Assembly: GCA_000388065.2 (NCBI GenBank)
Contig: KB932204.1
DNA: 19,246 nt
Source of the DNA: Fonticula alba ATCC 38817
Lineage: Eukaryota > Protista > Nucleariida
Strand: one strand, 5' to 3'
Shown: positions 6,165 through 18,714 of the stretch, piece after piece
How the letters are laid out: every line of letters starts with the position of its first letter
Numbering within the stretch: the stretch's first letter is position 1
Notes under the pieces: model-generated
The model's input: only the letters and a program-made list of their open reading frames with translations
Database searches by the model: none
Told to the model about the DNA's origin: nothing
Made by a program: the position numbers and the translations under genes

Positions 6165-6301
6165 GATCCAGGCGCCCCCTGTGCCCTGGGGAGCCCCCCA
6201 CAATGCACCGAGAGCATCTCCCCCCTCCTCGTCTGTCTTACCTGTCCCTGGCAGGGATACTTCCTCGGCTGTGACGAACGATGCAAGCTCGCATGTATGT
6301 A

Positions 6302-6305
<4 letters not shown>

Positions 6306-6342
<37 letters not shown>
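6306..6342. repeat. (TG)~18 microsatellite between the convergent NAA20 and kinase stop codons
   Basis: Read directly. Confidence 0.9.
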
Positions 6343-6348
<6 letters not shown>

Positions 6349-6438
6349 CGTGTGTGTTGTGCGGGAGGGAAGAGAGTAAATTTATTGCTTTTTATGTGTG
6401 CTTTTTTTCTAGATACGGGGCAAGAAGAGGAGAAGAGG

Positions 6439-9400
6439 TCAGCCTGGAGCAAAAGGGGCCAGCTGCGCAAGGATGTCACGAGCCGAGGGGCGTCCCTCGG
6501 GCTGCACATCCCAGCACCGTTCTATGAGGCTGGTGACTGCCTGCTCGGCGGGCTGGCCACCGAGGCTGGCTTTAAGCTCTGCCAGGCTGGGCCGCTCGCC
6601 GGCGAGGACTTGCTGGCGAATGTTCCTGCTCTTGAGCCCTGTTTGCCAATGTGCGAGAGGGGAGAGGGGGGGGGGGATAGACAGAGCAAGATCAGTTGCA
6701 TGACACGTTATGCGTATGCGTGAGGGTTAGAAAGAACAGAATCCACTGCCAGGGATGAGGGGGGATAGAAGGGAAAAGGGGAGGGGGGGGGGGACGCACC
6801 GGACCAGGGCAGCTTGCGGCAGAAGATGCACCAGAGAACCATGCCGGCGGAGAAAACGTCACTTCCCCGGAGTGCGGAGTACTCGAGGAAGCGGCGTTGC
6901 GAGGAGGCGAACAGGAGCTGCGGACCGGCAAACAATCGGTCGGAGGGGCACACGCCAGGAAGCGGTCGGGGGAAAGGGAGGATGAGCAAGGGGAAGGGAG
7001 AAGAGGGAGGAGCAGCCGACGGGGCGCGGAAGGACATTCTGAACAGGGGTGGGGGGGGGGGGGGCGCACCTCGGGCGAGGAGTACGGCACGGCCGCGGGG
7101 TTCAGGGCCGGGGCGCGGCGGGAGGCATTCGGTGGGGCATCCTGCAGGGTGGAAAGGACATTGGAGGAGGCGAAGTCGCCGATGACCGCATTCCAGCTCC
7201 CATCCTCCGATTGACGGACGAGAATGTTGGCCGGACGAATGTCCCGATGGACAATACCACGGGTATGAACGGCAGCAAGGCCAGAAGCTGGGCGGTTTTG
7301 GGGGGGGGGGCCGTCGGCGGTTGTCGGCCGGGGGAGGGCGCAGCCAGCGATCACAGGTTAGGCGCATGGGGGGGGGGGGCAAGCTCCGGGACCGGAAAAG
7401 GAGGACAGACAAGGCACGACGCACCAAAGTGCACGGCAATCCGGAGCATGGCCCGCGGCGTGAGGGGGAGATCCGACCGGAGGAGCGTGGCCAGGCACGA
7501 GTAGTAGAGCTCGGTGATGGCGGCGCGCGGCTGCTCGGAATAGGCCAGGAGCTTGAGAATGCCGAACTCCTCGCGCAATGTCCAGAGAATGGTGATCTCA
7601 TTGTGGAAGGCCGAGCGCCCAGCCGGCGAGGCGGGATCACGATAGGTTTTGATGGCCACCGAGCCCCGGGTCTGCAGCGTCTGCCGGAGCTGGGGGTTGA
7701 GGATGCGCGCGGAGGAGACCGATGCCTGAAGCCCCTCGCCGAGGGGTTCGAGCATCATGAAGTCGATTTCGGCCGACACGAGGACCGAATCCGGAGGGGA
7801 GAGATCTGGTTCGGGAGGTGGGCGAGGAGCAGGGGGGGGGNNNNNNNNNNNNNNNNNNNNNNNNNNNNNCCGGGCGAAAGGGGCCTACCGGAAAAGGTGT
7901 TGAGTGGAGTCAGGCCGAGATTGCCCTCGAGGCCGGCCTTGGACCGGGTGGGATCCTGCTGGCGTCGCCGGTAAAGCAGCAATCCCACCAGAAGCAGGCC
8001 CACCAGAAGAATGGTCACGCCGACGCCGACGCCGACGCCCACACCGATGGCTGGCGTGCGTGCACAGCAGAAGGGGACACCCCATGAGAAGGGTGCCGGA
8101 GCAGGCGCAGGATGGGGAGGGTGAGGATGGGAGCAGGCAGAGGGATGTGCAGGGGGGGGGGGGGGGGGGATTGGCCGCGGCAGCGGCTGGGACACAGGGC
8201 ATCACAGGTGGCCCACGCACTGCGGTTGGCCGGCGGCGGGGCGGCCGACGAATCATCGATGCAGTCCTCCGATGAGGGACCATCACAAAGAAGGCAGGCC
8301 CCGGCGCAGGGGGCACACTGGGCCGGGGTCGCTTCCCCGGCCGGGCTCAGGTAAAACCCATCCGGACAGGCCTCCACACAACGGTGGCCCCCGGTGGCGG
8401 CGCTCAGCAAGGCAAGCCCAGCCTGGCAACGGTCGCACTTGGGCACCTGGGTGCATGCGAAGCCACGGGGATGGTCGGCCGCCGGCTCGCAGGCCGGCGT
8501 CCCCGGGGGGGCCGCCTCGGCGGCGGCTTCATCGCACACGGCACAGCCGTCCACCATGCATGGCAGGCAAAGGGCCTGGTCGGGGGCCCCAGCGGCCCGG
8601 GGCCGATGCAGGGCCGCGTAGCCCACCGCGCAGGGGTCGGCCGTGCAGCGGGTTTGATCGGTGACCAGCCACTCATCCGCCGACGGGCAGGCGGTGCACT
8701 GGTCCGCCTGGGGACCCACGCAAGCCGAGCAGGCGGCGTCACACCCGACACAGGCGCCGGTGGCCGGCTCCAGGAAGAAGCCATCCGGGCAGATCCCCGA
8801 GCAGGCGCCCTGCCAGAGGGAATGCCCCGGGGGGCAGCCGGTGCATTGGTTGTCGGCCGGGCCGGCACAAGTCACGCAGGAGCCATGGCAAGCCTGGCAG
8901 GCATCGGCCTGTGCAAAGGACCCGGCCGGGCAGCTGGCCAAGCAGGCCCCCTGCCAGAGGAACCGGCCGGCCGGACAGACGATGCAATCCCCGGCAGCGG
9001 GGCCATCACACGCGGCGCACGATTCATGGCAGGGGCCACAGACCCCGGTGCTGACATCGGCATAGAGACCATCGGGACACCGCACAACGCAGGAGCCCGT
9101 CCCGGGGTCAAGCCAGAACCCATTGAGGCAGGCATCGCAGCCGGCGGAGCCGGAGCAAGCCGCACAGCCGGCCGGGCAGGCCGTGCACCCGGCCCCAGTG
9201 GGCCGGAACCCGGGAGCGCAGGCGGTGCAGGCGGTCGCGCTGTCAGCACACTGGGCGCACTCCAGGGCGCAAGCGGCGCAACGCCGGGCGGCAAGGTCGG
9301 CGAAGCGCCCACTGCCGCAGTCCTCGACGCAAGTGTCATCAACCGGGTCGAGGAAGCGGCCACTCGGGCAGCCGGTGCAGGCGGCGGCATTGCCGTAGCA

Positions 9401-11506
9401 CGAGGCACACGATGTGTCACACGGCTGGCAGAGGCCCGCCTCCAGATTGATGAAGTGCCCTGGGGCACAGTCGGAGGAGCAGGCAGTGACGCCGTCCTGC
9501 TGGTCGAGCACCAGCCCCGGGAGGCAAGCCTCGCAGGAGGTGGCGTCATTGCAGGTGCCGCAGCCGGCGAGGCAGGCGGCACAGCTGCCGGTGGTGGCAT
9601 CGCCAAAGCGCGAGCTCCCGCAATCCTCCACACACCCGTCGGTGCGCGGGTCGAGGAACTTGCCAGCCGGGCAGGCGGTGCAGGTGGCGGCCGTGCCGGC
9701 GCATGCGGCGCAATTCGCCGCGCAGGACTGACACACGCCGGCCGAGAGATTGGCAAAGCGGCCGGCGCCGCATTGGTCCGTGCAAAGGGCCGGCGCCGAG
9801 TGCACAAACACCAGGCCCGGGGCACATGTGTCGCAGGTGCCCGGGCCGGAGCACTTGGCGCAGGAGCCATGGCACGCGGCACAGCGCCCATTGGCATGGT
9901 CGGCGAAGTGCCCGGAGCCACAGTCATCCGTGCAGGTGACCTGCCCGGAGGACTGGTGCTCGCGGAGGACGAAGCCCGCGATGCAGGCCCGGCACACGTC
10001 GATGTCGGAGCAGGAGGCACAGCCCGTGGAGCACAGGGCGCACACCCCCTCCGACGAGCCGAGCCAGCTGACCGCCTCGGATGGGAAGGACCCGGCCGGG
10101 CAGGCGGGCTGGCAAAGGCCATCCGCGCGGAGGAGCCCCACATCGCAGGCGGTACAGGCATCGGCACCGGGGCCGGTGGCATGGACACAGCTCGGATGAG
10201 CCGGGGCACACCGGGGCCCGGTGGCCGGCGACAGGTCCGCGAAGAAGCCCACCGGGCAGAGGGCCTCACAGCGGCCCTCCCGGAGGAGGCGATCCGGGTG
10301 GCAGGCCGTGCAGTCGGCAGCCCCGGGCCCGGCGCACGCGGCACAAGAGGCGTCACAGGCCCGACAGGCCCCGGCATCGGAGAACTGCCCATTGGCACAT
10401 GGGGCCAGGCAGGGGCCGGACCCATTGGGGGCCGGGGCCCCGGCCCCCATGCAAGCCGTGCAGTTGGTGCTATCCGGGCCATCACACCTCAGGCAGGACC
10501 GGTGGCAGGGCTGGCACCGGCCGGCCTGGGGGAAGCTGCCCTCCGGGCAGGCGGACAGGCAGGTGCCCTGGAAGAGGAGGTGGTCGGCCGGGCAGGTAAT
10601 GCAATCGGCCGAGCTGGGGCCGTGGCAGGTGGCGCAGGCATCATCACAGGGCTGGCAGTCGCCCTCGTCGCCGGCATTGAGGAAGCCGTCCGGGCAGGAG
10701 GCCGGCGCGCGGCAGGCACCGGCCTCGGTGAGACGGAGCCCCGGGGCACAGGTGGCGCAGGCGGTGGAGCTGCGACAGGTGTGGCAGCCCGCGGCACAGG
10801 CATGGCACCGGTACTCCGGGCCGTTGGTGTCCATGTGCAGAAGGGGGAATTGGCCGGATGGACAGGGGGACCGGCAGGAGCCGGCCTCCCCGGCCGGCAT
10901 GAACAGATCGCCCTGCCGGCACTGCAGGCACTCGGTGGCCAGGGGGCCGGCACATTCGAGGCAGCTGGAGTGGCAGGATGCACAGGCGGGAGATCCCTCC
11001 CCCTGGGAGAAGGTCCCGGCCGGGCAGCCGCCATCCGGGGAGCAGGCGCCGGTGGCCTCCAGCGTGCGCCCAGCCGGGCAGTCGGTGCACTGGCCATCCG
11101 GCGCACAGGTGGCGCAGGTGGCCCGGCAGGGCAGGCAGATGCCAGAGCCCGGGGCGGCAGCAAAGCCCGGCGGGCAGACGCTCACGCAGTCGCTCTCGAA
11201 GAGCACATGCTCAGCGGCCGTGGCCAGGCAGGCATGGCAATTGCCGGGCCCCGGGGCAAAGCAGGAACTGCACGTGGGATCGCAATCGGTGGTGGCAAGC
11301 CGACGGGCAAGTCCCGGCAGCCGGCCAGGGCCTGCTCCGGAGGAGGCCGCCATGGCCGTGGCGCTGGGCGACGGCGCGCCCGAGGGGGGGCCGCCCAGGG
11401 AGGCGGTGGCCCCGAGAACCATGTGCAAGAGCAGCAGGGCTGTGGCCAAGAGCCGGGCCAGTGACGGGGGAGGGCCCGCCACCGGGTGAGGTCTTACCGC
11501 AGCCAT
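6439..11506 (-). CDS. Single-pass receptor-like protein kinase (TKL/TK-like) with signal peptide and ~19-20 furin-like (FU) Cys-rich repeats, ~1454 aa, 6 coding exons
   Basis: Exons 11506-8221, 8050-7889, 7805-7425, 7287-7070, 6917-6800, 6638-6439 total 4365 nt, all GT..AG and phase-compatible (the intron 7888-7806 contains the N gap). Features in order: hydrophobic signal peptide LARLLATALLLLHMVLGATA; repeats of CxxxCxxC..C..C..CPxG(F/Y); TM helix IGVGVGVGVGVTILLVGLLLVGLLLY followed by RRR; kinase motifs LGEG..A.V, VAIK, FHNEITIL, HRDIRPAN, GDFA, YSSPE, SDVFSAG, CWDVQPEGRPS. Confidence 0.9.
7841..7869. other. Assembly gap (29 N) inside a kinase intron
   Basis: N run. The flanking donor (7888) and acceptor (7806) are phase-compatible, so no coding sequence need be missing. 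Confidence 0.9.
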
Positions 11507-11780
11507 GGTGGGAGCTGGAAGGAGAAAAGGAAGGGAAGGAAAAAAAACACCACACATGGGGGGGGGGGTAGGGGAAAGTGTGTGGGAGGGATCGGCAAGT
11601 CTCAGTAGAGGGGGACTATCCGAGCATGCATGTTGGCAAGAAAGTAGCACAGAGAGGGGACACGGGGGGGGGGGAGGGGGGGAGGGGGCAGAGAAGGGAG
11701 AAGGGCGTGAGGGCAGGAGACGGGTGTCCTCGGGGGGGCCTGTCGCCCCCGGTAGTCTGGGGTGCCTGCCCAAGAGGGCC

Positions 11781-11907
11781 GGGGGGGGGGGGGGGGGGGG
11801 GGAGGGGGGGGCCTTTCCCGGGGGGGGGGGGGGGGGGGGGGGACGACGCGGGATCGGGGGGCCCCCCCCGCCCCATAAAAAAAAAACCCCCCCCCCCCCC
11901 CCCCCCC
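11781..11907. repeat. Cluster of long homopolymers (G22, G23, A10, C21)
   Basis: Read directly. Other long runs are C33 at 12606-12638 and C44 at 18744-18787. Exact lengths may be assembly artefacts. Confidence 0.75.
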
Positions 11908-12602
11908 GGCTGCACGATCGCGCCCAGCGTGGACCGGCCGGCGAACACGGGCCGGCAGCCGGCGGCTCCCCTCGATGCCTGGGAGAGAGGACGTCTAAAT
12001 GGGGCCCGCCCCCCCCCCCCGGGGGAGTGTGTGGCCAGGTCTGCGGCCATTTTACGCGAAGAGGACGCAGATGGTCAAAACCACCGGCTAGAATCCACCC
12101 AGGGACCGGGTCAAGCCGCCAGGCCCCGGGCGGAGGTCGGGCTGGAGCGCATTGGCTCCATTAGGCCGCCGAAACGGGGGCGGGGCGCGTTCGGCGGGGA
12201 AGCCCCTCCGTTGTACGCCCCGCCTGCGCCCGGGATGCGAGGCGGCTCCCCGGCCCCCCCCCCCCCCCCCCTGGCTAGCTCGCCAGCCTTCTTTTTTCCC
12301 GCAGCCGACGCCGCGCTTCCCGGCAAGGTGCGATCCCCGGAGCCCGGTGTGTGTAAATATGAACGTGTGTGTGGTGTGTGCGCGTCCATGCCCGTGTGCA
12401 GCTGGCCCGCTGCCGCCGCCGCCGCCGCCGCTGGGGCCGGGGGGGCGTGGGGGGGGGCCACACCCGGCCCCGCGTCGGAGCCCATTAAGCAACTCATCTC
12501 CCTTCGTAGGCGGCCCCCAGGGGGGGCAGACATGCCGGTTGCACATTCTCCAGAACACGCGCGCCCCGGACGCCGGTGTTGTCTCGGTTCCACCGACGCC
12601 TC

Positions 12603-12640
<38 letters not shown>

Positions 12641-12756
12641 GCCGCCAGCGTGTGCCACCAACGCCCCGGGGGTGAGGGCTCAGACGCGCCCACGCACGTC
12701 TCTCGCCCTCTCTCGGCCGACGTGCGTTGGGATTTGCCCCGCTTGCGAGGGAAGCC

Positions 12757-12762
12757 AAAAAA
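12757..12762 (-). terminator. RNA polymerase III terminator (T6) of tRNA-Lys
   Basis: TTTTTT on the minus strand, 4 nt after the discriminator base. Confidence 0.8.
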
Positions 12763-12766
12763 GAGA

Positions 12767-12839
12767 AGCCCACTGTGGGGCTCGAACCCACGACCCTGGG
12801 ATTAAGAGTCCCATGCTCTACCAACTGAGCTAAACAGGC
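12767..12839 (-). tRNA. tRNA-Lys(CUU): tRNA-Lys, anticodon CUU, 73 nt, no intron
   Basis: Minus strand reads GCCTGTT TA GCTC AGTTGGTA GAGC A TGGGA CTCTTAA TCCCA GGGTC GTGGG TTCGAGC CCCAC AGTGGGC T. The cloverleaf is complete, with intact A and B boxes. Anticodon CTT is at 12806-12804. Confidence 0.97.
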
Positions 12840-13172
12840 ATTCGGAGGCGACCAGGTCGAAGTTGAATATATTCCTGGCGTTTTGGCCCCGGTCTTTGCA
12901 GGCACAGCGGCGGTTGCACGTCCACTACGATGGGCCAGCCACACACACACGCACACCGGGCACCGGGCGGATTCATCGGCCTGCACGGCTCCCTCCCGTT
13001 CCACCCCTCACCTGACGTCACCTGCCTCCGTTGCTCCAGCCCCTTCTCGCCTCTTTTTTTTCCACCCCCCCCCCTCTCCCGTTTGCTCCTCTCCCTCTCT
13101 CGGCACCTTTCCTCCCGCCCTCCCCCCCCTCCCCCCACGCTCCCCCCATCGCCTTCCTCCTCTTGTCCCCAC

Positions 13173-15962
13173 ATGCCGCACGACGGTCAAGCGCCGGAGG
13201 GGAGGAAGCGCACACGCGCTCCTGGCCCCGATGCCGATCCCTCTCACGCCCACCGGCCCAAACGCCGGCTCGACCAGACGGCCCACATTGAGGGCCTTCT
13301 CCGGCGCTGGGTCGCCGGCAGCTACCCCGGCCTGGGGGAGAGGGCCGCGCGCTTGGCGGCTGGCCCTGGTGCCAGCTCGCGGCGCGATGTATGGCCGCCG
13401 CTCGCCGAGCTGGCCGAGAAGTGGCGCGCCTCGACCGAGGCGGCCGACCTCCCCTCGGGCCCGGCGGCCGACGACCGGCAGAAGCGCCTGCTGGAGCTGG
13501 CTTTGCGCCGGCTTCTAAATGAAGCTGTGGTCCGTCGGCCTGCTGCCCCTCGATGCCGGCATGTTGTTTGTTTGTTTTTTTTGCCCTTTCCAGCAGACGC
13601 CCTCGCCCGCCGCTCCCCCCCCCCCCCCTTCACCCCCGGCCTGGCTCCCCCAAGACTGACTTAACATCGCCGACGAGCCAGCGCGCCAGCCCCGGCGCCC
13701 CGTTCCTGGCTACCGCCTACCTGGATGTGGCCTTGCTGATTGCCGAGTCCGGCCGCGCGGCCTACGACCTGCCCCTGGCCCTGGCAGCCGAACTGATGGC
13801 CATGCTCAGCCTATCGGCCGCCGAGAGGACCTTCGGCTGGCTCGAAGCCCGGCAGGATGCCTTCGACTTTCGCCAGAAGAACATCAAGGTGCGAGGGGCT
13901 CCCCTTGAGCCGGCCTCACGGCCGGCTGCATGTGCCGCTCGGCCACCGGCGGGCATGCCTCCTTCGCCGCCCGGCTGCCCACTCACACATGCATTCAACA
14001 CACGGCCATCCCCCCTCCCCCTTGCTTCGCGCGCTCCTCGGTCGGGGGCCGCCCACCGTAGCCCGAGCCGACCATCCTCATTCTCCTGCGCATGATCAAT
14101 GATCTGATTCGGCGGCCCGCTGGGCCGGACTTCTCCGTGCGCATTCGCCTGCTGGCATCGCGCTTCTTGCCGCTGCACGAGCGCTCCGGCACCAACCACC
14201 ATGGGGCCTACTTCCGGGGCGACACCCCGGTCCCCGGGCCGGCGGAGCGTCCCGAGCGCCCGACCCCCTCCTACAAGGGCCCGGCCGAGTGGGACCCTGT
14301 GGGGGGTCCGAATGAGGGCGGCCGCGGCTCGGTCGCCGGCCGTGGGTCCGGCTCCAGCCCGGCCGCCCCCTTTGTCAGCGCCGACCAGGCGTTTGCGGCC
14401 TTCTGCTCGGTGCAAGCCGCCTTTTCCCAGTCGCTGCGGCAACTCACGGCATCTGGCATCCTCAGTGAGCTCATGGTGCGCTGGGCCGTTTCTCCACACG
14501 AACACGCGGCCTCGGGCCGGCGCCTCCCCCACCGGGCCTCACTCCCTTACTGATCGGTCCTCTTTGTGTGGCAGAATATCCGCACGATCCTCGGCTTCTT
14601 CCACTACCAAACCACCACCAATGACGAGAGCGCAATCCGGCGCCCGGCACGGGTGCACAGCGTGGCGGACTTCATCACCGCCGCCCGACGCCTGATCTCC
14701 GAGGACCCGTCGCGCGACGGCCAGATGCCCGGCAGCCCCGACCCCGAGCCTCGGGCCAGTCGACTTGCCAGCGAGGCCGAACGCGCGTCCGGCATCCTCC
14801 CCAGCTGGCATCTGGCCCCGCGGTTCATCCTCCTGCCGCATTTGTTCCCCCTGCAGGCTAGCAATGCGGACTTCCGTTTGCAGTTCTTCATCCAGGCCCT
14901 GGTGTTCCTGGACTCCGTGCTGGCGCTGTGCCCTGCCGCCCGGTCGGCCGGCCCCGAGGCCGAAGGCACCTCCGCCGACGGCCCGGCCCCGGTCAAGGCC
15001 CCCTCGCACATCAACCGGGCCATGGTCGTCCGGCTGAGTCTGACATCCGAGCATGCGGACCTGGCCGCGGAGCTAACCAGCCGCATTCACGCCATCCTCG
15101 AGACCGATGAGGGGCCGGCCATGCCGAACCTCGGGACCCTGCTCGAGCACCTGACATTCAACGAGCAACACTGGGTATGCAATCACACCCCTTCGGCTCG
15201 CTCCAGCGGGCGGGCCGGCGGGTGGGTTTCCTTTCCCCCTTTCCTCTTGGCCTTTCTGTGCCCCCCTCTGACCGACCCCCCCCCCCCCCGCCGCCCCCGC
15301 CGCGGGGCTCGGCCACTCCGACACATCAGATCCAATGGAAAAACAACAATTGCCCGCCGGTGGAGCTGCCTGCCACTCCGGCGGTGGCCTTCGCCCTGGG
15401 CCAGGAGGTCCTCCGGCAGCCGGTCCCCCCTCCGGGGACCACGCGCGACGCCGGCGACCTGGAAGCCGAGCTGGCCGAAACCGACCCCACCTACCGGCTC
15501 AACGCCCGGGCCGTGGACCTGGGCTCGGAGCATTTGAACACCCTCTGGGGAACAACGCGCGACCCGTTGGCTGCCCTGAGGGACACCTCCTTCCATGTGC
15601 CTGGGCTGGAGGACCTGCTAAATGAGCAGAATGCCGATGCTCGGACCATTGTCCAGACGGAATTGTCCACCTGGCGCACCATGCGCCAGCTTCTGCAATC
15701 GCGCCAGGCCATGGTCAACAACTACTGGCGCGACCTGTGGTCCTATGAGGGCCGGCGCAGCAAGCAGATCTTGGCCCAGCTAAAGAAGGACGATGTTCCG
15801 CCCGGGGACCAGACGCAATTTGAAGCGGCCCTCGGTCGGGCTGCCAACCGGGCCGTGTGCCCGTCGTACGCGGTGCCGATTGGCGGGGCATTCTTCCCGA
15901 ATTTGCAAACACCGCGCCGGGCCCAGCGCGATCCGGTCACCACCCCGGCCCCCGATGCATGA
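13173..15962 (+). CDS. THOC1: THO complex subunit 1 (THOC1/Hpr1), ~745 aa, 5 exons
   Basis: Exons 13173-13529, 13655-13888, 14062-14475, 14575-15174, 15330-15962. Thoc1-type motifs: LELALRRLL, LPLALAAELM..L....ERTFGWLE, LLRMINDLIRR, RIRLLASRFLPLHERSG.N, LQASNADFRLQFFIQALVFLD, EQHWIQWKNNNCP, YRLNARAVDLGSEHLNTLW. The 3' end is less certain. Confidence 0.88.
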
Positions 15963-18474: not shown

Positions 18475-18714
18475 NNNNNNNNNNNNNNNNNNNNNNNNNN
18501 NNNNNNNNNNNNNNNNNNNNNNNNNNNNNNNNNNNNNNNNNNNNNNNNNNNNNNNNNNNNNNNNNNNNNNNNNNNNNNNNNNNNNNNNNNNNNNNNNNNN
18601 NNNNNNNNNNNNNNNNNNNNNNNNNNNNNNNNNNNNNNNNNNNNNNNNNNNNNNNNNNNNNNNNNNNNNNNNNNNNNNNNNNNNNNNNNNNNNNNNNNNN
18701 NNNNNNNNNNNNNN
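18475..18714. other. Assembly gap (240 N)
   Basis: N run upstream of the sirtuin. Confidence 0.95.

Follow-up and report, generated by a model that had tools for sequence, protein, structure and literature searches.

Nucleariids are the sister lineage of the fungi, and among holozoans (choanoflagellates, filastereans and animals) some receptor tyrosine kinases (RTKs) bear furin-like (FU) repeats. Outside the opisthokont receptors, the transmembrane kinases (TMKs) of Entamoeba make up a large multigene family, of which a further subfamily has been described (PMC2211552, PMC2880585). PATMK (TMK96) of E. histolytica, which has a role in phagocytosis, is composed of a signal peptide, 25 CXXC repeats, a transmembrane (TM) helix and a kinase whose specificity, Ser/Thr versus Tyr, is not predictable from the sequence (PMC2211552). 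A comparison of 72 genomes reported no receptor-kinase architectures in fungi and many Ser/Thr kinases in Fonticula alba (PMC6733946). The gene considered here belongs to the slime-mold-like amoeba F. alba, strain ATCC 38817, and lies on the minus strand, from 11506 to 6439, of a stretch of 19,246 nucleotides of contig KB932204.1 (assembly GCA_000388065.2), hereafter the window.

With a probability of roughly 0.8, this gene encodes a type-I single-pass receptor protein kinase, spliced and transcribed, in which a stalk of FU repeats is followed by a TM helix and a TK/TKL-like kinase. The ectodomain is a rod of disulfide-rich FU repeats without a separate globular head, the kinase closes the protein, and ectodomain, TM helix and kinase are carried by a single spliced mRNA. 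A preliminary description of the window, made from its letters alone, had proposed the order signal peptide, FU repeats, TM helix and kinase, with the repeats mostly in one 3.3-kb exon and no L domain, and this plan is borne out: a signal-like N-terminus, 20 repeat signatures, a TM helix at aa 1097–1122 and a Pfam kinase were found, exon 1 measures 3,286 nt, and the exon-by-exon Pfam search gave no Recep_L_domain match at E ≤ 0.1. The same description had taken ectodomain and kinase for one gene rather than two, which the cDNA linking ectodomain, TM helix and kinase confirms, and had guessed at a Fonticula-like organism, in agreement with a 100% identical NCBI protein from F. alba. Its parallel with the Entamoeba TMKs also proved apt, the architecture matching that of PATMK (PMC2211552).

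Among described systems, the Entamoeba TMK family, compared by architecture only, is the closest analogue. Both are type-I proteins of amoeboid phagotrophs with a CXXC-rich ectodomain (25 motifs in PATMK, 56 in the Fonticula protein), one TM helix, an ambiguous kinase and membership of a large family, but Entamoeba belongs to Amoebozoa and Fonticula to Holomycota. A family profile (A1), built from nine Fonticula kinase domains, had no Entamoeba protein among the 20 named of its 150 best matches, and the only named match from Archamoebae was a Mastigamoeba protein (P0193; 95 bits) lacking the Cys-rich/TM plan. Given the different supergroup and the weakness of this single match, which is without the plan, the plan common to the Entamoeba TMKs and the Fonticula protein is probably convergent. 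PCSK5/PC6, R-spondin and the Cys-rich domains of EGFR and the insulin receptor have the same repeat fold and Cys spacing; unlike them, the Fonticula protein has no protease, thrombospondin or L domains, and its array is the whole ectodomain, coupled to a kinase. Holozoan RTKs have the receptor-kinase plan in common with it, and its modelled kinase fold compares with IRK, FGFR and RET at TM-scores of 0.72–0.76, whereas it is devoid of tyrosine-kinase motifs and of a phosphotyrosine docking tail, has TKL kinases first by sequence, and belongs to a kinase clade confined to Fonticula plus some environmental sequences. TKL kinases (the receptor-like plant RLK/Pelle-IRAK type, RIPK and RAF) provide its best solved sequence relatives, namely RIPK1, BRAF, RIPK3 and TNNI3K, yet no LRR, death or RBD modules accompany the Fonticula kinase.

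Furin-like repeats and the kinase domain

Whole-protein analyses were run on the public 1,454-aa protein (P0001). Its ectodomain (aa 1–1096) contains 154 Cys, 56 CxxC motifs and four N-glycosylation sequons, and begins with a hydrophobic, signal-like N-terminus (LARLLATALLLLHMVLGATA) and a Pro/Ser/Ala-rich linker, after which the 20 repeat signatures (C-x2-C-x3-C-x2-C...) recur with a period of ~50 aa from about aa 76. The TM helix, placed at the hydrophobicity maximum, is followed by YRRRQQ, and a juxtamembrane segment of ~45 aa separates it from the kinase. Sequence matches and a structural model indicate that the repeats are furin-like in fold and kinship. In Pfam, Furin-like_2 (25.2 bits; cut-off 28) and GF_recep_IV (25.5 bits; cut-off 29.5) come just below their gathering scores, and paralogues exceed the cut-offs at the same aligned positions (52.4 bits for Furin-like_2 in P0101; 39.8 bits for GF_recep_IV in P0085). 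The top matches from outside Fonticula are the Cys-rich regions of PCSK5, with E ~1e-128 and 28–29% identity over 82–98% of the query. An AlphaFold (AF2) model of aa 540–760, made from 19 aligned family segments, reached a pLDDT of 86 and, against PDB, matched R-spondin Fu1-Fu2 first (probability 1.0, TMt 0.60–0.79, 23–29% identity), followed by EGFR/ErbB ectodomains.

Two other assignments of the ectodomain were considered and rejected. The Pfam VSP profile scores ~98–106 bits (105.6; cut-off 31.4), through short repeat-level stretches, the best of which aligns 805–853 with profile positions 91–137 of 397. The hallmark of Giardia VSPs is a C-terminal TM helix followed by a short invariant CRGKA tail; here CRGKA is absent, and YRRRQQ and a 330-aa kinase region come after the TM helix, so that the VSP match is attributed to the CxxC repeats that the two have in common. 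Membership of the EGFR/insulin-receptor ectodomains fails likewise, as no L domains flank the Cys-rich region and the linker passes directly into the repeats from ~aa 76.

The kinase domain (aa 1167–1448) is matched by Pfam PK_Tyr_Ser-Thr at 87.3 bits (cut-off 23.1), over profile positions 3–258 of 258, and by Pkinase at 85.2 bits (cut-off 31.7) over the full profile, the exon pieces being colinear with the profile. It ends six residues before the stop, leaving no C-terminal tail. In the alignment, none of the five core catalytic residues is missing (K1202, E1219, D1292, N1297 and D1314). The solved relatives retrieved by sequence are RIPK1 (1.6e-16), BRAF (~1e-12), RIPK3 and TNNI3K, all of them TKL and only ~25% identical, together with EGFR (4e-13) and Src (1.7e-10). 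The kinase model (pLDDT 89) matches the insulin receptor (IRK), FGFR3, FAK, RET and BRAF/CRAF in PDB at ~1e-17 to 1e-16 with TM-scores of 0.7–0.8, and RAF and tyrosine kinases score about alike. A feature search of the ESM Atlas returned generic kinase clusters only. A word-index search with the kinase region found just P0001 and weak bacterial Ser/Thr kinases; since the paralogues were missed too, its result is uninformative on relatives.

Tyrosine kinases are marked by the catalytic loop HRDLAARN, or HRDLRAAN in the Src type, and by the P+1 loop P-[IV]-[KR]-W-x-A-P-E. Here, the catalytic loop is HRDIRPAN and the P+1 loop AAVPYSSPE, with no P-x-x-W and no AAR/RAA triplet, and assignment to the tyrosine kinase group, as a true RTK, was rejected by motif. 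The domain is best described as TK/TKL-like by its sequence and as RTK-like in architecture only. Accordingly worded, the earlier proposal of an RTK-like, TKL/TK-like receptor stands for the architecture and for the TK/TKL-like sequence, but not for a tyrosine kinase by motif.

A lineage-specific family and a divergent copy

The receptor is not a singular one: the genome-wide paralogue count gives one divergent copy among ~100 family loci. Judging from the sequence comparisons, this is a solitary and rapidly evolving gene in a lineage-specific family whose members are built on a common plan. In a local phmmer search, paralogue kinases scored 95–172 bits, against at most 65 for other kinases. 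Searched against its own genome, profile A1 yielded at least 145 exon-level matches, and those covering the catalytic core correspond to ~95–105 loci, at least 65 of which score above 170 bits. Many family loci lie in dense clusters, at C10:261–613 kb, C5:82–400 kb, C9:55–97 kb and 983–1066 kb, and C8:1790–1834 kb, and some loci terminate open frames of 9,000–14,000 aa. The present gene, at C4:1321611–1326678, stands by itself, with the nearest family match ~110 kb off.

A profile search of 1.84 billion representative proteins found ~50 proteins that reach 240 bits or more within one domain. Each of these 50 has 30–114 CxxC motifs and a TM helix ~45 aa ahead of a C-terminal kinase, and in all of them Pfam recognizes kinase and FU/VSP-type domains only. 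About 17 of the 50, the present protein included, are all stalk (≥12% Cys), while the longer members bear head regions without Pfam assignment; Cys makes up 13.4% of the pre-kinase part in the present head-less protein versus 6.6–10.7% in members of 2,000–3,400 aa. Along the stalk, positions are conserved from member to member, with 39–41 Cys in the aligned segments. A FastTree analysis of 75 domains places all 50 rows presumed to come from Fonticula on one side of a branch with support 96, and the query, whose branch of 1.22 (median 0.33) is the longest inside the family, sits outside a crown of 40. The present protein therefore combines a kinase nearest to family members, the plan of Cys-rich ectodomain, TM helix and C-terminal kinase, and a position on the Fonticula side of the tree. 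Several paralogues carry the NCBI name 'TKL protein kinase', and a full-text search of the literature found no paper describing a Fonticula receptor-kinase family.

Beyond Fonticula, the next tier of matches, at 170–205 bits, is an environmental clade in which some proteins, 1,783–2,154 aa long, combine 60 CxxC motifs with a TM helix and a kinase and are encoded on a eukaryote-like 15-kb contig. The nearest non-Fonticula relative of the kinase (~193 bits) is found in L001, an uncultured, eukaryote-like contig of JGI metagenome 3300028775, where the gene at 8001–13352 encodes a 1,783-aa FU-rich receptor with TM helix and kinase. Under ~135 bits, the named matches are Pandoravirus, Acanthaster and Mastigamoeba kinases. 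The Pandoravirus Ser/Thr kinases (P. dulcis, P. celtis and P. quercus; P0240, P0221) are ~1,700 aa long, each have a TM-like segment before the kinase and, at ~118–124 bits, rank among the better matches of the family profile outside Fonticula.

The consensus of this family reads H[CR]DLKP[AG]N in the catalytic loop and T/S in the P+1 loop, and the present copy departs from the family at three positions. Two residues past the catalytic Asp it has Arg, where 47 of 51 Fonticula members and all 10 environmental sequences have Lys; in the P+1 loop it has Ala, where 49 of the 51 have Thr/Ser; and the DFG motif reads DFA, Gly being kept in 48. No other member of the 51 combines all three. The family itself is not uniform at these motifs: HCD replaces HRD in 26 of the 51 and DLG replaces DFG in 39 (positions 1291 and 1315 of P0001), and P0192, with HCH instead of HxD, is a clear pseudokinase by motif. 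A catalytic-loop Lys together with a P+1-loop Thr is the pair that marks Ser/Thr kinases. The loss of both, while the catalytic residues are retained, would fit either weakened activity or altered specificity.

Several points weigh against an ordinary, active receptor kinase of a Fonticula-specific family. With three functional kinase positions changed, the activity or specificity of this copy may differ from that of the family. Moreover, the signal peptide was assessed by eye, without a predictor; the number of loci is estimated at exon level and takes in weak matches, which could be other kinases; 13 of the 50 proteins are named as F. alba, the others being assigned by score, architecture and composition; and the tree was computed by FastTree only.

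The first alternative, which is possible though improbable, is an impaired or regulatory, pseudokinase-like domain, in which the fold is kept, catalysis is weakened and the protein serves active members of the family as a scaffold or co-receptor. The combination of Arg, Ala and DFA, met with in this copy alone, the longest inner-family branch and the presence of at least one clear pseudokinase in the family (P0192) all favor it. However, K1202, E1219, D1292, N1297 and D1314 are retained, the K→R and G→A changes are conservative, transcripts of the gene exist and are spliced correctly, and the kinase model is confident.

A shift in specificity is the less likely outcome: loss of the Lys-Thr pair would have led to tyrosine or dual specificity, making the protein a convergent true RTK. 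The Arg of HRDIRPAN does occupy the same position as the Arg of Src-type HRDLRAAN, the P+1 Thr/Ser of Ser/Thr kinases is absent, the insulin receptor, FGFR3, RET and FAK are among the top structural matches, and the specificity of PATMK is likewise unpredictable from sequence (PMC2211552). Nevertheless, AAVPYSSPE lacks P-x-x-W and no AAR/RAA triplet occurs, TKL Ser/Thr kinases come first among the relatives by sequence, the other family members have K and T/S of the Ser/Thr type, RAF kinases about equal the tyrosine kinases as structural matches, and a C-terminal docking tail is wanting.

Doubtful still, and speculative, is the view of this protein as a dedicated receptor for kin recognition or aggregation signaling in the sorocarp-forming life cycle. 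F. alba is aggregative, and a large, diversified family of surface receptors could in principle serve the recognition of self or partners; yet with ~100 paralogues nothing singles out the present copy, the Entamoeba TMKs, which are the analogues studied best, function in the phagocytosis and growth responses of a non-aggregative amoeba (PMC2211552, PMC2880585), and uncultured eukaryotes whose way of life is unknown have related receptor kinases too.

Gene model, transcript and neighborhood

Manual reading of the exons gave six exons with a coding sequence of 4,365 nt for 1,454 aa. Their translations, six of six, are exact and ordered substrings of P0001, with only split codons between them, and the exon 1 search identified P0001 as the public NCBI protein 'serine/threonine protein kinase [Fonticula alba]' at 100% identity. 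The manual model is thus the existing public annotation, exon for exon, and the gene is not new to databases. All five introns are GT..AG and 83–170 nt long, four of them with the donor GTGCG[TC], and the splice phases are consistent. Since the region has 65–73% G+C, long open reading frames (ORFs) are open on either strand; the Cys-repeat coding occurs in the minus-strand frame only.

All features of the gene lie on the minus strand. Exon 1 (8221–11506; 3,286 nt) starts with the ATG at 11506, encodes aa 1–1095 of P0001, comprising the signal-like N-terminus (aa 1–37), the low-complexity Pro/Ser/Ala linker and the ~20 FU repeats (aa ~76–1085), and ends in phase 1. It is followed by intron 1 (8051–8220; 170 nt; GTGCGT..CAG), which contains a poly-C/G run at 8151–8169. 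Exon 2 (7889–8050; 162 nt) encodes the TM helix (~7971–8048), the basic stop-transfer sequence YRRRQQ and the juxtamembrane segment, and intron 2 (7806–7888; GTAGGC..CAG) is 83 nt long as assembled, with the entire assembly gap 7841–7869 inside it. The kinase is divided among the remaining exons: exon 3 (7425–7805) carries the N-lobe, with the G-loop LGEGLQASV, the VAIK Lys1202, the alpha-C Glu1219 and the hinge (PK_Tyr_Ser-Thr profile positions 3–108); exon 4 (7070–7287) the catalytic loop (HRDIRPAN), DFA and the long activation segment, which ends in SPE (Pkinase profile positions 110–152); exon 5 (6800–6917) subdomain IX (DVFSAGMVLW; Pkinase profile positions 176–198); and exon 6 (6439–6638) subdomains X–XI, with Arg1438 (profile positions 229–258), and the TGA stop at 6441–6439. 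Between them lie intron 3 (7288–7424; 137 nt), intron 4 (6918–7069; 152 nt), with a poly-C/G run at 7046–7064, and intron 5 (6639–6799; 161 nt).

The transcript is documented by contigs from two runs of 2012, X1 (3,164 nt) and X2 (3,516 nt), which extend from the 3' untranslated region (UTR; 6362/6364) into exon 1 (10230/10580) and lack the five introns, each removed exactly where predicted. The joints are 8050|8221, 7805|7889, 7287|7425, 6917|7070 and 6637/6638|6799/6800. By run label, X1 and X2 were only guessed to be RNA; their cDNA origin follows from the exact removal of five GT..AG introns on the coding strand. The 3' UTR covers at least 6362–6438, where the contigs end at 6362/6364, and the 5' UTR at least 11507–11555, as further cDNA contigs, one of them at 11381–11555, cover exon 1 up to 11555. 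An in-frame ATG at 11557–11559 (minus strand), 17 codons ahead of the annotated start, lies just past this limit, so that either 11506 or 11557 may be the true start. As for the gap, it is placed between the donor G|GTAGGC (intron from 7888) and the acceptor CCAG| (exon 3 from 7805), the phase is 1 on either side, and the joint rebuilds a GAT codon. The contigs of both runs join 7889|7805 with no extra letters, exon 2 measuring exactly 162 nt in X1 and X2; the gap is therefore intronic and conceals no coding sequence. An artefact, in which ectodomain and kinase belong to two genes or a frameshift or missing exon is concealed by the gap, whose real size is uncertain and which separates the TM exon from the first exon of the kinase, is hardly credible against contigs that run from the 3' UTR through the kinase and TM exons into exon 1, the exact joint with its consistent phase, the identical public 1,454-aa model and paralogues of the same continuous architecture.

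Other apparent joints were discarded. Those from 7066 to 8151 (runs X12 and X13, 'organism B') are artefacts, as only poly-G reads lie on the homopolymers 7046–7064 and 8151–8169. Exon 1 joints 8705 to 10084, 9179 to 11009 and 10950 to 11009 have sides of 20–23 nt and are most likely cross-matches of repeats or paralogues rather than introns. In the neighborhood of the gene, a (CA/TG)n microsatellite lies at ~6290–6330, just past the 3' end, and the plus-strand ORF 14566–15534 matches THO complex subunit 1 (efThoc1, 34.3 bits, Pfam); the remaining long flanking ORFs of the window have no Pfam match. A second assembly gap (18475–18714; 240 N) is outside the gene.

Proposed receptor function and the biology of nucleariids

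As a receptor protein kinase with a FU-repeat stalk, the protein would be expected, from its sequence, to display the FU array on the cell surface, where the array may bind a ligand or surface itself, or may space and oligomerize the receptor. Clustering by ligand or contact would then gather the kinase domains, which could trans-phosphorylate the long activation segment and pass the signal to cytoplasmic Ser/Thr, possibly dual-specificity, substrates. By analogy with what has been proposed for Entamoeba TMKs, the size of the family, its clustering and its diverse ectodomains would fit environmental, prey or cell-contact sensing.

A broader reading can be offered tentatively, with the odds well against it as a whole: nucleariids may have independently built, and massively expanded to ~100 loci, an RTK-like system from FU stalks and a private TK/TKL-like clade, in which the present copy, with its Lys-Thr pair swapped, may be shifted toward tyrosine or dual specificity or act as a regulatory pseudo-receptor, and the family could underlie prey sensing or collective, aggregative behavior. 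The single gene is an ordinary one, annotated as a receptor-like kinase, and the useful part is the picture at the level of the family. No receptor-kinase architectures were found in fungi by a comparative study (PMC6733946), yet F. alba, from their sister lineage, has ~100 loci of one private clade. Beside holozoan RTKs and Entamoeba TMKs, this is a third case in which Cys-repeat receptor kinases have been expanded by a protist that is phagotrophic or aggregative. The copy with three motif changes makes a natural test case for linking kinase sequence to specificity or activity, and the family as a whole offers candidates for how Fonticula senses bacteria and other cells.

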